A stretch of DNA of 64,000 nt from Zygnema circumcarinatum SAG 698-1b (Eukaryota > Plantae > Zygnematophyceae): the NCBI GenBank assembly GCA_037447605.1, contig CM074808.1:992001-1056000 (forward strand), written 5' to 3'. The notes under the pieces were generated by a model. It worked only from the letters and a program-made list of their open reading frames with translations, had not been told where the DNA came from and made no database searches. The position numbers and the translations under genes were made by a program. Positions 12,483 to 19,400 of the stretch are shown here, piece after piece; within the stretch, counting starts at the first letter, position 1; every line of letters starts with the position of its first letter.

Positions 12483-12776
12483 CGACGAATGCACGCGCAT
12501 CTGTTTGTCGCACGGGCCATGCGACGCCGTAACTGCGATGTCGCACACCCCCGTGCGACAAAAGGCAGGTGCGCGCGGCGGCGGCGCGCGGATCGCCGGC
12601 GGCTGAAGGCACGAGCGGGAGAGGGAGAGGGAGCGGGAGTGGGAGTGGGAGTGGGAGTGGGAGAGGGAGAGGGAGAGGGGGAAAGGGGGAGAGAGGGAGC
12701 AGGAGAGGGAGAGGGAGAGAGAGGGAGCGCGGAAGACCTTCTCCACGAAGGGATGTGTCCCTCTAAGTTTGAGGCC

Positions 12777-15755
12777 ATGGCTGCCACGAGCCTCCCTTCC
12801 ACTCTGCCTCCTGCATGCCGAGATCCCAATGCCCACATCCTCTGCCGCACGCAGCCTCCATGGAGCGTTGTCGAACACGGCACGGCCGGCCAAAAAGACC
12901 ACCGCCTGCTCCTCCTGGACGGCCAGGGCCGCCACGTGTCGCCCTGGCACGGCGTCTCCCTCTATGCCGCCTCCAACCTCGTCCACATGACCTGCAAGAC
13001 GCCACGTGGCAGCTCCGCAGCGTACGAAGTCGCCCCCGACGAGGAGCTCCAGCCCCTCCGTCCGCGCCGCTCGAACCCTAATTTCCGGCGCGCGTGTCCA
13101 TGGAACCTCGGCCTTTTGCCGCAGACGTGGGCCAGCGCCGCCGCGCAGGGCCATGGCGGCCTTCCGTACGACGGGCGGCCGCTGGAGGTGGTCGAGATCG
13201 GGCGGCGGACGGCGCAGAGAGGGCGGCCGTACGCCGTGCGCCTTCTGGGAACCTTCGCGCTCGTGGAGGAGGAGGGGCCAAGAATTTCCTGGAAGGTGCT
13301 CGCCATCGCCGTGGATGACGTCATGGCGGACAAGCTCCGCTCGGTGGAGAGTGTGAGTCGGGAGATGCCCGGAACGCTCGAACACGTGCGGGAGTGGCTT
13401 CGCACGTGCGAGTGCTTGGGACCTGGTAAGGCTTTCGAATGAATTAGAGTTGTCTTGGTTAAGAAAAAAGGAAAAGTTTCATAAGTGTTTTTTGTAAGAT
13501 TTTTGGTTTATGGGTTTTGGTGGAGTTTAAAGTGGTTAAAGTGGCTGATTTTTGTAAGTTTGGGGAGGAGGGAATGTTCAGGTGACAAGTTCCGGAAATT
13601 TGGGTTCAACGAGCGCGCAGTTGAAGGGCAAATTTTGTCCACTCTCGTTTCGCAGACGCACACGTCGTGGCACGCTCTCCCACACCACCGGAAACCTCTC
13701 TCTCCCACTTCCCTCTCTCCCACTTATCTCTCTTCCACTTCTCTCTCTCCCACTTACCTCTCGTCCACTTCTCTCTCTCCCTCGTCTCCCTCTCCCTCTC
13801 CTCTCCCTCCCTCTCCTCTTCCTCCCGCTGTGGCGTACACAGAAGCGTGGAACGCCCAAAAATTGCATCTCAAGAAGCACCCAGCTGTGCCCCTATCTCC
13901 CTCCTCGACAGAAGCTGCTCACACAAATTTTCCTAAACAGAAAAAAGAGGCAGAGTGTGGCTCTACCATAGTGAGAGAAAACAACATAATGTTGGGAGGA
14001 GCGGAGTCGGGAAACTCCACTCCAGGGCGGGAAGAGCGACTACGGTGGCCTGCATTCTTCAGAGTGCATGTGAACTCTGTTACTGAGTTAAAACTGAACA
14101 CGGAGATTGGAGCAGACGCAGCTGGGAGGCAGAGAAACCACGAGAAGAATGGCGAGAGTTTCTCCTTTATGAGGAAGGTGTTCAAGTTGCCCTTCAGATT
14201 GGGCCGATCAGCGGGAGATAGAGGAGGTAGGACGAGTGGTCCTGTAGGAGGGCGCATATTGAGAGCATCTTCTGTGCCAGAGAAGGTGCTCCAAGGGATC
14301 AGCCATGGCTTCCAGGAGGCGGATTTGGGGGCATTTCGGCGATGGAATTCAGATGATGACAACTTGAGAAGTTCGATGTCGAAGGGGAGGAGGCGATCCT
14401 TGAGTGCACTGTCGCCTCCGAGTAGCTTAGAGGGGGATAGTTTGGAGGAGAGCAAGGGAGAAAGTCTGAAGGAAAGCAGAGAGGACGAGGTTGGGGGGGG
14501 TGCTGAAGTGAGGGAGGAGGAGAGGGATGGAGATGGGGGGCTCATGGAGAAGGAAAAGTCACTGAAAGTGACGGAGGACATGGCTATGGCTATGGATTCT
14601 TTTTCAACTTTGGGCGTTGAAGAAACTAGCGGAAACCACGTACCTTCTCTCAGTGGCTCTGATCAGTTCGTGAGAGTGAAAGAATCTCCTTCTATTGCGA
14701 GTTCGGAGGAAAGAAACTCGTCCTCTGAGAGCCTGGAAGGTTCATCCATGGCGGCAGATAGAAGCAGCAAAGAATCGGAGAAGGAGAAGGAAGAGAGCCA
14801 TGTGGAGGCTGAACTCCCTACGGAGGTAGAGGAGGATCTGGTCTTAGACGACGAGATTCCGATAGCGAGAGTGGTAGAGGGTGACTTTCCCCCTCCGCCT
14901 CCCCCTCCCTTTGACTCAAAGGGCCCAAAGGGCGGCCGCCAGGTCTCCTTCAACAACATCGTCCAAGTGTTGACCTTCAATCCTTCTCACGAGGAAATTC
15001 CCTTAGCGGCTCCGGTCACCTCGACGGCACCTCCATCCATTATTCCCTTTCCAAGGGCCGGCGGAGAGAGCAAAGAGAACAATATGAGGAAGCCGAAGGT
15101 GAACGAGAAAAGCTTCGGAGGAGGTCCCACTCATTTCCCTTCCTCGTGGCCTCCTGCTGCTGCTTCGGCGGCGAAGGGGCACCCTCACAAAGGCCATATC
15201 GTGCTGATGAGCCGCAACGGAGCTCCGCAGAGAGTGGGGGGGGGAGGGAAGACATGGACCCAAGAAGGGTTTTTGCCGCCGAAGCCACCGATACCTCCAA
15301 AGGCTCAGGAGTTTCCACGAGCGAGTTCGCCTCGGTCGAGTCTAAGTCCCACAAACGTGCCCTCGGGGGAGAGTCTGCTATGGAAGCAGATGCAAGGGCA
15401 GGGGCAGTTTTCAGGGCAGGCGAAGCCCAGGCTCTCTCCAAGAGGGATTGACAGCGGCAGCCGCAAGCTCGTGATAAAGACAGCCTTGAAGAGGGCGGAA
15501 GGGGGGTTGGGTTTTCAGGGGGCGAGCGATATTGGGTGGGTGGAGGAGAGGCCCTCCCTAGGCTTGCTGCCGTTTGTGGAGGATTCGGACCTGTACTCGT
15601 GCTCCGCCAGCGAGGAGAGCTCGCCGAGGTCGCCGGAATCCCCCAGTCCCTTGACCCTTTCACCGAGAAATTCCTCACACGGAATGGCGGCCGTGCATCC
15701 CATCGCTTTTGCCGCTGTTTCGGGCTTTGCCCTGCCTGGAATGGCTGGCTTGTAG
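12777..15755 (+). CDS. Family I soluble inorganic pyrophosphatase-like (PPa6-type fold, catalytic residues degenerate) fused to a ~690-aa Ser/Glu/Pro-rich disordered tail; ~940 aa
   Basis: Exon 1 at 12777-13425 (alternative ATG 12753) encodes DGQGRHVSPWH...WNLGLLPQTW...VVEIG...WKVLAIAVDD...PGTLEHVREWLR. The GT-AG intron 13426-13581 joins G+GT in frame to exon 2 (13582-15755). Exon 2 begins with the PPase C-terminal part (GDKFRKFGFNERA...QTHTSWHAL) and stays open to TAG. Confidence 0.85.
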
Positions 15756-16407
15756 ACTGCAGTTAACAAGGAGAGGGTTTATGCGTTTATTTATTCGATT
15801 TATTCTATCCTTTTTAAAGTAAGAGAGATTACTATCTCTTCTTACCGTCAAACTCCGATGTATTTGTTCACTAATACCGATCCTTAACTCGCAAACGGAG
15901 CTAGAAACTCTTTCGTAGGATAATACCTTTTTTGTACAGGAATGTATGGTAGGTGTGAGGTAGTAACTGAGAGGACATAGAGCGAAGCTTGACTCCTGTA
16001 AAATCAAGGGATAACACGAACATGTGCACGACAATCGTTTTTCTTCTCGTTCGGGTGTCGTGTGTGACCGCATTAGCGTGCCTTGGACAGGGGGGTAATC
16101 CGGGCACGGATTGCTTGTGGTTCGTTTCCAACCAATGCAAATGCTTAGCTCGTTGCAAACCGTTAAAAGAATGAAACTCAGACGACGTGTATATAAAATT
16201 GAATTAAGTTTGAAACCACACTCCTTTGTAAGGATACCTCCACCGTCTATCCTATATGTAAGGTTGAAACCACTCACAAAGCAGATAAAGCTCACACATG
16301 TTGGAAATTACGTGTAGTAACTGTACAGTTCTCAGTGCCCTTGTTCCTCCTATACAAAGCGCCCTGACGAGGATCGTCTCGTCCTATAGAAAGCAGGGCG
16401 CCTGCAG

Positions 16408-19400
16408 TCACGCAAAGATGCGGCCTAGTCGCACATCGATGACGCTGTACCTGTGCACGGAGGCACATTCGTTTCCCTGAAAGAGGTCGAGGGGGCCATG
16501 CTTCCCCTCCGCAGCATTTCCATGTGCGAGGACCTCTTCCAGGGGCCTAAGTCCCCTCCACTGCCGCTTCGCAGATTCCATAAGGCGCTCAGCTTCAGAG
16601 CTTCGGTTGGAGGCCAAGCCAACCACCTCCGCAAGGCGGGCTGCAGGGTGGCACGCATGGATGGGGAATGATGGTAAAGAGGGGGGGCGATCTCTTTTTT
16701 TAAGGGATTAGGCCAAGCAAACTCAAACCAGCTCAATGCTGAGAATAACGGTGGGACAGGACAGGGAGGAAATAGACTTCACCTTGTGTTAGCGACTTCA
16801 AGTGTGCCATGTCCAGGGGATCGCTTGCTTCTGCAAGGCGCAACAATGGAGGGTGTAAGGTGATCGGCTAAAACAGTACAACATTTAACTTGTCTGCGTG
16901 ATAGTTTTGTTGTGCAGGACTGATTACACAGCCGTGCTAGCAGGGCTGTGATGACAAAGGAACCACTTCCCGACACCTTCCTTCATTGCGAATCAGCGGT
17001 TCCAATCAAAGCATGAACTAGGAAGGCAGGCGGCAGCAACGGAGTGGGAATAAATCTTGTAGTAGGATTTTAGCATACACACCTTCAGGTTCAGCCTGTA
17101 ACCTAACTCCCAGCAATTCCAAGGATCGTCGATACAGTCCCTGTTGCAAGGATGGCAGCCAATCCAACATAATCAGCTGACGGAAAAAGATTACTATGTG
17201 GCATCTAAACAAGTAAAAACTCTCTTGTCATAGGGATGCCATCATACCTCGGCTACAATGCGATCACCCGAGCTCCTAGCCTTTGCCCTGCAGTTGTATA
17301 CATGCGCAATGGTAGAAAGAACAGCCCCAACACGAATATGCTTGTCACCTGCATCTCAAGACATGGGTTGTTTTTACTGGCGGGAGAAAAAGCAGTTTCG
17401 AATTTCAAAATGCAACCGTAACTTCAAATTTCACCGCTTGACTTCGGCAAGATCCCGTAAACCTCAGAAATGCAATCAGGAAGGCCCGCCATTCTTTACC
17501 CCAAGGACGACAATGTACAGCCACTCTCATGGCCCAAACCACAACCTTGGCACAAAAGAGCAAACTTACAATAAAGCAGGCCTAATTGCTGTACATCAAC
17601 TAACTGCAACAAACTAGCTGATAGCTCATCATTCAACACTCAGAAAAAGATTGGGAACGTAAACCTTACCACTGATTTGCTCAGCGTGGTTTAGGGACTC
17701 TGTCAGCCGTTTCTCTGCTCCTTCAAAGTCTCTGCAGGAAAAAGTAACCCCTCGACACTACAGCATTCATTCTTTTCCCAAAAACAGCGTCTAATGGATT
17801 TCCTCGTCTGAGGATCAGTTGAACCCTCTCTCATGTGGAACATGCATGTATCCCAAACACAGGGTCTATTCCCAACGGCAATAGTCTCCAAAACCTTGTG
17901 AAGATAACACCAATGTGAATCGCTCCTATTGACGAAGCAAAGTGCTGTGGAGAACTTACCCTGAATGTGCTTCTAACTGGCCCAAGCCCGCCAAAGAGCC
18001 CATAATCACTTCCTTTGGAGCCATGGCTGCTGCTGCAACAGCTAAATAGGGTGGTCCGGTCTCCGCTTGTCTGGCAAGATGCAGAGCTCTTTCATAGAGT
18101 ACTGAGGCATGTGACAAGCGACCATAGGAATGGCAGTGTTCGGCATCGGCGAGGACTGCAGCAGCTGCAATCAAGATGACAAAGGCATGGATTGAATCAT
18201 GACTGGACAAGCTACAACAAGGGTAAACACGAAGTGACAATGTGACAAAACACCATCAATGAGCAATATGACTTACCTGATCCGTAGACAAAGTCTTCAT
18301 TGAAGTTCTCTTGAAACGAATTAGCCTCGACAAAGATTCTTTCAGCTGCACACCAGCAAACAGGTTGTTCGTACCTTTCATAAATCCAAGTTAACAATGA
18401 ATGATCAGTGGGTTCCTAACGAAAGCCTTGCTCTTATTTTCAGCATCAATAATAATCCATACAGGCCATCCTTAACCTCATAGCCATCCTTTGGTTTGCT
18501 GACCTTACCAGTCTCCACATTTCCCCTCAGGTGCTCCGCAAACGCTAGTGCAGAGAAGGCACGGGATCTTAAAGCATGTGCTACTCCATCATCCCAGCCT
18601 TTTTCGCCTGCCGCAGTAGCAACTTGAACAGCATTGGTTGCATATCTGATCGCTGCTGCATCCTGCAGGCAGAAAATGCAAGCTTTTCTTTACTCCCGGT
18701 GCCCCAAAGATGAGCTGGCTTGGCATTAAGCTGGTCTATTCTGAAGAGTCGATGACCAACTTTGCACCAGAAGGCATGGGACCACATTGATAGAGTTGAC
18801 TGATCGAAATCCTTAAACTACTAGAGGCCTAAAACGAGATCAGCGCGCAATGCAGAACTATCGATGCCACCGACGACTGGATATTGAGTTTGATGAAGTA
18901 CAACGCACAAAACTAGCAGCTAAGACGTCCTTCACAAAGTCCCACACTCTGAATTGTGTAAAAAATTGGAATAATACGCATGAGCCAAGAGTGGGCCAGA
19001 TTGTGGGACGGGATAACCTACATTGTTTCTACGAAGCGAGAGGCCCGAATGTGCCTCTCCAGCAGCAACTGTAAAGAAAGGACAGCTCAGGACAAAGGCC
19101 TGTTAGGATATTCCCAGTCACTAGGCCACTCACTTAAAACAAGCGATGGGAACTAGGGCGGAAAATACTTAATTAGCATGGACATGCTCCGTAAAGCACA
19201 ATGCACCGATCGTCTCCAAACAATCGGGGCCATGCTTTTCTTGAACGTATGCTATGACAATTGTTGTCTGCCTGACCTTGAACTTCCGGCGAAGCACCTT
19301 CCAAGGTACTTGCTTGCTCCAAAACGCGGAAAGCATCATCAAAATTAGCCCTGCCAATAGCAAGTGAACCACAAGCATAAAGCATGCGACTAGCCAGGCG

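Follow-up and report, generated by a model that had tools for sequence, protein, structure and literature searches.

Zygnema circumcarinatum SAG 698-1b encodes, within a stretch of 64,000 nucleotides (contig CM074808.1 of GenBank assembly GCA_037447605.1, positions 992,001 to 1,056,000; referred to as the window), a protein of 940 residues which consists of a head related to family I inorganic pyrophosphatases (PPases) and a long tail spanning residues 249-940. The gene is located on the plus strand at 12777-15755, and all positions given below are those of the window, with the features of the gene on this strand. The tail contains a short island, RQVSFNNIVQVLTF (residues 669-682, 14937..14978), in which an RVxF motif (RQVSF) is followed by a phiphi[xF] motif (VLTF), phi being a hydrophobic residue. 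The composite is conserved in the tails of five related proteins, RVxF motifs are enriched in the tails of the family, and the match of the island to the docking motifs of known regulators makes it rather probable that the protein is a docking subunit of protein phosphatase 1 (PP1, or type one protein phosphatase, TOPP) with a pseudo-pyrophosphatase head. The island provides a functional handle, previously lacking, on a family of dead pyrophosphatases, namely candidate docking on PP1/TOPP.

Conservation of an RVxF island in the tail

The consensus of the RVxF motif is [K/R]-x(0,1)-[V/I/L]-x-[F/W], with the phiphi motif 5-8 residues downstream (PMC10731240). RQVSF, which occupies residues 669-673 (14937-14951), conforms to the definition [KR]-x(0,1)-[VIL]-{P}-[FW] of the same source and also fits two stricter patterns in the style of published ones. 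V679-L680-T681-F682 begins 6 residues past F673, in line with the definition of a phiphi[xF] motif. The stretch that holds the island, GGRQVSFNNIVQVLTF (14931-14978), is read by direct translation. It is one of four islands named in the original prediction, which had been made from the DNA letters and a list of open reading frames, and all four translate exactly as written where they were placed. The same prediction warned that short motifs are likely to occur by chance in long disordered regions and that conservation has to decide, and the behaviour of the single tail agrees with this. In 20,000 shuffles of the query tail the probability of at least one match was P=0.38 for a loose RVxF, P=0.11 for RVxF with a hydrophobic pair, P=0.044 for a stringent RVxF, P=0.31 for RRxS and P=0.55 for a mode I 14-3-3 site.

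Conservation was assessed among the relatives of the head. When exon 1 was searched exhaustively and without a profile, 1255 relatives were obtained, of which the best 150 representatives were analysed; the models of some of them are gene predictions or fragments. Enrichment was determined in the 32 relatives with tails of at least 300 residues. The pattern [RK]-x-V-x-F-x3-[VI]-x-[VI] had been fixed from the query before any relative was known and was later relaxed to allow x(0,1). In this form it is matched by five of the 32 tails compared to 0.02 expected, and none of 2000 shuffles reaches five. All five relatives contain the composite [RK]-x(0,1)-V-x-F-x3-V-x-V-phi-x-F. Two of them are from Mesotaenium (P0018, RRVHFKDTVQVISF; P0030, KQVRFSNVVQVICL), two are from Gonatozygon (P0020, RRVSFSQVVHVRTI; P0075, RVKFNEEVNVVMF) and one is from Closterium (P0071, RVRFNDEVDVLMF). 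Across the six Val-anchored islands, including that of the query, V0, F2, V6 and V8 are invariant while the x positions vary, and a basic residue is found at -1 or -2. Positions 8-11 read phi-phi-x-[FIL], with a hydrophobic residue at position 9 in five of the six and F, I or L at position 11. With a hidden Markov model built on the island, the six proteins reach 24-28 bits, compared to a maximum of 5.6 bits among 880 shuffled tails.

The island is conserved independently of its surroundings. Its mean pairwise identity is 44%, versus 5-8% in each 20-residue flank block, so that the conservation of RQVSF amid diverging flanks, which had been named as the key check, is seen in five relatives that represent three other genera. 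The distance of the island from the start of the tail ranges from 336 to 1728 residues, as expected of a short linear motif, and when the query tail is compared to all other tails with blastp, nothing beyond the island aligns at E below 1.9. Simpler forms of the motif are also enriched. A loose RVxF is present in 19 of the 32 tails (7.9 expected), two basic residues plus RVxF in 10 (1.1 expected) and RVS[FW] likewise in 10 (1.35 expected), and a stringent RVxF occurs in eight tails, query included, versus 1.0 expected, a result which holds equally with 40-residue block shuffles. Two further variants are recurrent. RVxWGWVE-x2-E-[IF] is found in P0043, P0072 and P0131, and a C-terminal LRRS[LI]SF-x-E is found in one subclade.

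It is highly improbable that the RVxF and 14-3-3 matches lack a function and arose by chance in a long disordered stretch under weak constraint. Such an origin would be in keeping with the single-tail values for the loose RVxF and the mode I site, with the weak codon bias of the tail (third-position GC of 0.60 versus 0.81 in exon 1) and with the lack of alignment between relatives in any part of the tail apart from the island. It does not account for a 14-residue composite that recurs in five relatives of three other genera within flanks that cannot be aligned, and for the RVxF island it is contradicted by the profile, enrichment and conservation results.

Docking on PP1 and competing roles of the tail

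The closest parallel to the island is found in GADD34 (PPP1R15A). According to PMC12723162, GADD34 residues 552-568 (KARKVRFSEKVTVHFLA) contain KVRF as the RVxF motif and VHFL as the phiphi[xF] motif, bind the PP1 catalytic domain with an affinity of about 144 nM and have been crystallised in complex with PP1 (PDB 4XPN). The algal island is identical to this segment at R(-2), V0, F2, V6 and V8, and VLTF falls exactly where V564-H565-F566-L567 follows F558 in GADD34, with equal spacing. The composite common to both comprises a basic residue, V-x-F, three residues, V-x-V and then phi-x-F or phi-F-L. Because the match is residue for residue, the invariant positions of the algal islands are those aligned with the RVxF and phiphi[xF] motifs of GADD34. 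Both islands are located within disordered regions, which in the algal protein is a prediction based on the absence of a Pfam domain, a low-complexity composition and a low-scoring structural model. The likeness does not extend beyond the 14 residues. The algal tail has no PP1c_bdg Pfam domain, no GADD34-like eIF2alpha- or actin-binding region follows the island, and the algal protein in turn has a dead pyrophosphatase head. Neither a Pfam search (E up to 1) nor a word search with the island returned homology to PPP1R15 proteins (GADD34/CReP/ICP34.5) beyond the short motif.

In the plant lineage, RVxF-dependent docking on type one phosphatases has been shown experimentally for SBG1 (PMC13652734), and Arabidopsis KNL1 is reported to recruit TOPP (PMC11797493). 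SBG1, KNL1 and TdRL1 (PMC12109034) are disordered green-lineage proteins which dock TOPPs via a conserved RVxF motif, as is proposed for the algal protein. RVSF-type motifs with Ser at the x position, as in the query, are common among these regulators, which are unrelated in sequence to the algal protein and do not contain an enzyme-like head. SBG1 additionally needs a SILK motif, which is absent from the query. A separate likeness is seen in Gonatozygon P0020, where the phiphi part of the island (RRVSFSQVVHVRTIPR) resembles the TROPPO peptide SNFVQIRTIPR of varicella-zoster pORF38, a binder of the same PP1 groove (PMC12723162); this is probably a convergence on that groove.

In the algal protein, a family I PPase-fold head that has lost most of its metal- and substrate-binding residues is followed by a disordered tail of ~690 residues. 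In a PP1/TOPP-docking subunit of this kind, residues 669-682 would occupy the RVxF and phiphi grooves of the PP1/TOPP catalytic subunit in an extended, strand-like form, as do residues 555-567 of GADD34. The protein would then act on PP1 as a targeting subunit or as an inhibitor, or serve as its docked substrate. Phosphorylation of a Ser or Thr at the x position of RVxF is known to weaken PP1 recruitment (PMC12723162). Ser672 is located at this position with an Arg at -3, and by analogy it is plausible that it acts as a phospho-switch which releases PP1. The RRSLS-type sites of the tail would then be plausible kinase or 14-3-3 sites and possibly substrates in cis. The analysis shows the structure and transcription of the gene, its family membership and the presence, conservation and enrichment of the motif, and from these we infer that PP1 is bound, that Ser672 acts as a switch and that the head has some role. 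If true, the combination of a pseudoenzyme head with a PP1 dock would be a new architecture among PP1 regulators and would hint that PP1 signalling was elaborated in this particular lineage near the origin of land plants. A wider scheme, which is distinctly unlikely, is that the family forms a lineage-specific class of PP1/TOPP regulators in which the head still binds a phosphate-rich ligand (a phosphoprotein, pyrophosphate, polyphosphate or an inositol pyrophosphate), or else forms a pair with the true PPase, and so couples phosphate or energy status to PP1 targeting, with the Ser of RVSF and the RRSLS sites as kinase-operated switches.

Several observations weigh against PP1 docking. Within the query tail alone the docking motif is compatible with chance. 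The full composite is present in only six of the 33 long-tailed members, query included, and the tails of 13 of the 32 relatives contain no RVxF at all, which implies that no more than some of the family members dock in this way. Two companion motifs, SILK (for which the query has the string RILR) and MyPhoNE, are not enriched in the family tails. The six composite proteins may form one clade, as an approximately unbiased test on a tree of 38 rows is compatible with this arrangement (p=0.63), and the domain tree is too poorly resolved for independent retentions to be counted. Finally, a conserved hydrophobic strand such as this could bind a different partner or pack against the head of its own protein, and five of the six islands also fit the class 1a pattern of a nuclear export signal (NES), phi-x3-phi-x2-phi-x-phi, which is matched by FNNIVQVLTF in the query.

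This NES-like spacing keeps a partner other than PP1 in contention, and the island could accordingly be a hydrophobic strand or short linear motif that acts as an exportin-type NES, binds some other protein or packs on the pseudo-PPase head or dimer. The richness of the island in beta-branched residues, with which it could add to any exposed sheet, and the lack of the full composite in most family members would both fit such a role, which is nevertheless rather unlikely. The NES-type pattern is not enriched in the tails (11 of 31 versus 13.1 expected), nor is the pattern of the Atg8-interacting motif (AIM) type (seven of 31 versus 4.8 expected). V-x-F is always preceded by a basic residue, and PP1, unlike an NES, requires the exact spacing from RVxF to phiphi (PMC10731240, PMC12723162). 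In addition, both the W-type RVxWGWVE and the basic-rich RRS[IL]SF variants of RVxF are recurrent in the family.

The 14-3-3 side of the original prediction fared differently from the RVxF side. It had suggested that the protein may be a PP1/TOPP targeting subunit and had pointed to a 14-3-3-type site at RASSVP (residues 444-449, within GRILRASSVP at 14250..14279), and of these proposals the RVxF island passes the conservation check whereas the RASSVP site is unsupported. RASSVP fits the loose pattern R-x-x-[ST]-x-P and not R[SFYW]xSxP. Mode I matches are found in 16 of the 32 tails, where 16.0 are expected, and the only alignment of RASSVP among the tails of relatives is a weak one to P0082 (E=4.1). 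A 14-3-3 site at RASSVP was therefore rejected as a conserved feature, and its sequence is best read as a chance string. Better candidates for kinase or 14-3-3 sites are those of the RRSLS type, to which RRRSLS of the query belongs (residues 486-491, 14388..14405; similar to sites of basophilic kinases or 14-3-3 proteins). Matches to [KR][KR]S[LIV]S are present in nine of the 32 tails, query included, compared to 0.7 in shuffles, and none of 1000 shuffles reaches the observed count.

A possible but not probable alternative is that the tail functions chiefly as a 14-3-3 client under the control of phosphorylation, in which RRSLS-type sites and not RASSVP are phosphorylated by basophilic kinases (CDPK, SnRK or AGC type) and bind 14-3-3, and the RVxF-like strings, notably RRS[IL]SF, are themselves kinase sites in place of PP1 docks. 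The enrichment of [KR][KR]S[LIV]S favours this explanation, as do the four RKSLSM[TL] copies in Closterium P0071 and the conserved C-terminal LRRS[LI]SF-x-E of one subclade. The latter fits phi-x-R-x-x-S-x3-phi, which is a kinase consensus. Phosphorylation by itself leaves the invariant V6 and V8 and the downstream phiphi[xF] of the six composite proteins unexplained, and the x residue of the island is S, H, R or K and hence not always phosphorylatable. A 14-3-3 client is furthermore compatible with PP1 docking and need not replace it.

Two details of these basic sites can be added. In the subclade of P0052, P0058, P0067, P0068, P0070 and P0086 a longer C-terminal block, ERWGGGEGGLK[RK]...LRRS[LI]SF-x-E, is conserved, which may be a kinase or 14-3-3 site or else a Leu-type variant of RVxF. 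The repeated sites of P0071 (RKSLSM[TL] or RKSLSL) are located at tail residues of about 1486-1690, upstream of its RVRF island.

The pseudo-pyrophosphatase head and its family

Exon 1 matches the pyrophosphatase family PF00719 of Pfam (E=1.8e-15), and PPases of known structure match the head at E values down to 8e-27, including human PPA1 (7btn/6c45) at about 1e-26. The likeness to canonical family I soluble PPases such as human PPA1 (PDB 6c45) and yeast IPP1 (PDB 1e6a) is at the level of the fold and covers residues 29-210. The catalytic set, in yeast numbering, comprises E48, K56, E58, D115, D117, D120, D147, D152, Y192 and K193. Only E58 and D115 are retained in the head, or two of the ten reliably aligned catalytic columns, and E48, K56, D117, D120, D147, D152, Y192 and K193 are all replaced. 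Canonical PPases in the same alignment of 137 domains retain ten of ten. The head is thus a member of the PF00719 family by sequence and fold without the catalytic residue set. The fold is completed by the start of exon 2 (DKFRKFGFNERAVEGQILSTLV...), which encodes the C-terminal helix of the PPase within the region DKFRKFGFNERAVEGQILSTLVSQTHTSWHA (residues 218-248, 13584..13676). This helix is the only one in an AlphaFold2 model of the exon-2 protein, where it spans residues 10-23 of that protein, and it is kept in the family consensus. The algal protein then continues for another 690 residues, whereas the canonical PPases recovered by the same search end in tails of 0-195 residues.

The closest relatives of the query are found in the Zygnematophyceae. 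The best of them have heads that are 40-48% identical to that of the query, and many are 600-2000 residues in length with the PPase-like domain at the N-terminus. Those with a named source come from Mesotaenium endlicherianum (Mesen1, with at least seven models), several Closterium strains (among them CAI5973334.1), Netrium digitus and Gonatozygon kinahani, the latter two represented by transcripts, and all of them belong to the Zygnematophyceae. Two relatives originate from run ERR2041121, which is Gonatozygon kinahani CCAC 0216 (PMC13730384). The query and its zygnematophyte relatives share the same catalytic losses, a conserved C-x-C after REWLR and a long tail without domains; their tails can be aligned only at short motifs, and the full RVxF and phiphi[xF] composite is present in a subset. 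A Pfam search of seven long relatives returned PF00719 alone. In the alignment of 137 domains, 71 representatives including the query retain at most five of 12 scored catalytic columns, and the pseudo-PPases form one clade that is separated from canonical PPases with SH-aLRT (approximate likelihood ratio test) support of 100 and 99. Long tails are nearly confined to this clade, where almost all complete members have them and canonical PPases do not. A profile word search with 22 full-length family members matched only P0018, P0030 and the fragment P0153.

Among algae, the Zygnematophyceae are most closely related to land plants, and they carry a large, multi-copy and expressed family of dead pyrophosphatases. 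A literature search found no published description of such a family in this group and no paper that names both inorganic pyrophosphatase and RVxF. A protein of unusual size is P0001, which is derived from an 18.7-kb NCBI contig and comprises 5113 residues with 19 separate PPase-like stretches that are ~29% identical to the query head. Its sequence suggests that PPase-like domains have been strung together in a giant tandem array.

Gene structure, tail composition and the surrounding locus

The structure and transcription of the gene are directly apparent from transcript contigs. Exon 1 (12777..13425) encodes residues 1-216 and the first base of codon 217. It is followed by a GT..AG intron of 156 nucleotides (13426..13581, 35% GC) and by exon 2 (13582..15755), a single open exon of 724 codons with the stop at 15753-15755, and the two exons are joined in frame. 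The open reading frame on the plus strand that includes exon 2 (13485-15755, 756 residues) is longer than any other within the first 30 kb. A joint which skips exactly 156 bases is present in contigs of three public runs from three studies (X1, X2 and X6), and since exactly the bases of the intron are skipped, these contigs are transcript assemblies. The X6 contig comprises 12734-13424 plus 13581-16640, with no gap or further joint in the tail, and an X2 contig spans 13581-16183, gap-free across the tail. Both the splicing of 13426-13581 and a continuous transcript beyond 14.9 kb, on which the original prediction had depended, are therefore seen. The 3' untranslated region (15756..16183, 42% GC) extends at least to 16183, where the X2 contig ends, and runs into the 3' end of a minus-strand gene that is oriented towards it. 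Database searches and structure predictions were carried out exon by exon, and the spliced model of 940 residues served to number the residues and to make local alignments.

The intron is still present in one X2 contig (13398-13610), with a depth of 12 compared to 22-27 for the spliced form. Retention would lead to a stop at 13440-13442 and hence to a head-only protein without the C-terminal helix, although this contig may simply be pre-mRNA. Third-position GC falls strongly from 5' to 3' along the gene (12777-15752), from 0.81 in exon 1 to 0.60 in exon 2.

The tail was described from the outset as a disordered region of ~690 residues that is rich in Ser, Glu and Pro, and the spliced model agrees well with this. 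Its 692 residues include 101 Ser, 71 Pro, 64 Gly and 62 Glu, the exon-2 protein gives no Pfam family at E up to 1, and the single-sequence AlphaFold2 model has no secondary structure in the tail past the PPase helix, with a mean pLDDT (predicted local distance difference test) of 37; being free of any alignment, this model is weak evidence. Word searches with the whole tail and with the island region (query residues 445-545) returned no relatives, and in the whole-tail search low-complexity words probably swamped the result. In metagenome scans, neither the tail nor the head recovered a relative. Look-alikes of the tail in the ESM Atlas reached scores of at most 0.77, within noise, and were rejected; no weight was given to a 'GLC7-interacting protein 1' at 0.75.

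Further features of the tail include a CT-rich tandem repeat of 15 nucleotides which encodes repeats of SLSPTYLSSTSLSP (13696..13819; 8.3 copies of period 15 in Tandem Repeats Finder) and a polyproline stretch, FPPPPPPPF (14886..14912), which ends eight residues before R669 of the docking island. The C-terminus, AVHPIAFAAVSGFALPGMAGL (15690..15752, followed by the stop codon that ends at 15755), is moderately hydrophobic, with a Kyte-Doolittle mean of 1.43 over the last 20 residues. Only one of about 30 relatives (P0010) ends in a hydrophobic sequence, and a tail anchor was rejected on account of this lack of conservation and the borderline hydrophobicity.

A (GAGAGG)n microsatellite of ~115 nucleotides (12613-12727), set within an island of 69% GC, lies just before the start codon. 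The transcript contigs start immediately past it at 12734, which is probably due to assemblers or filters cutting at the repeat. At the other end of the gene, the convergent neighbour is located on the minus strand at 16177-16832 and contains an intron at 16641-16782 (CT..AC on the plus strand). The X6 contig passes from the pseudo-PPase gene directly into this neighbour, which implies that the 3' ends of the two genes abut or overlap.

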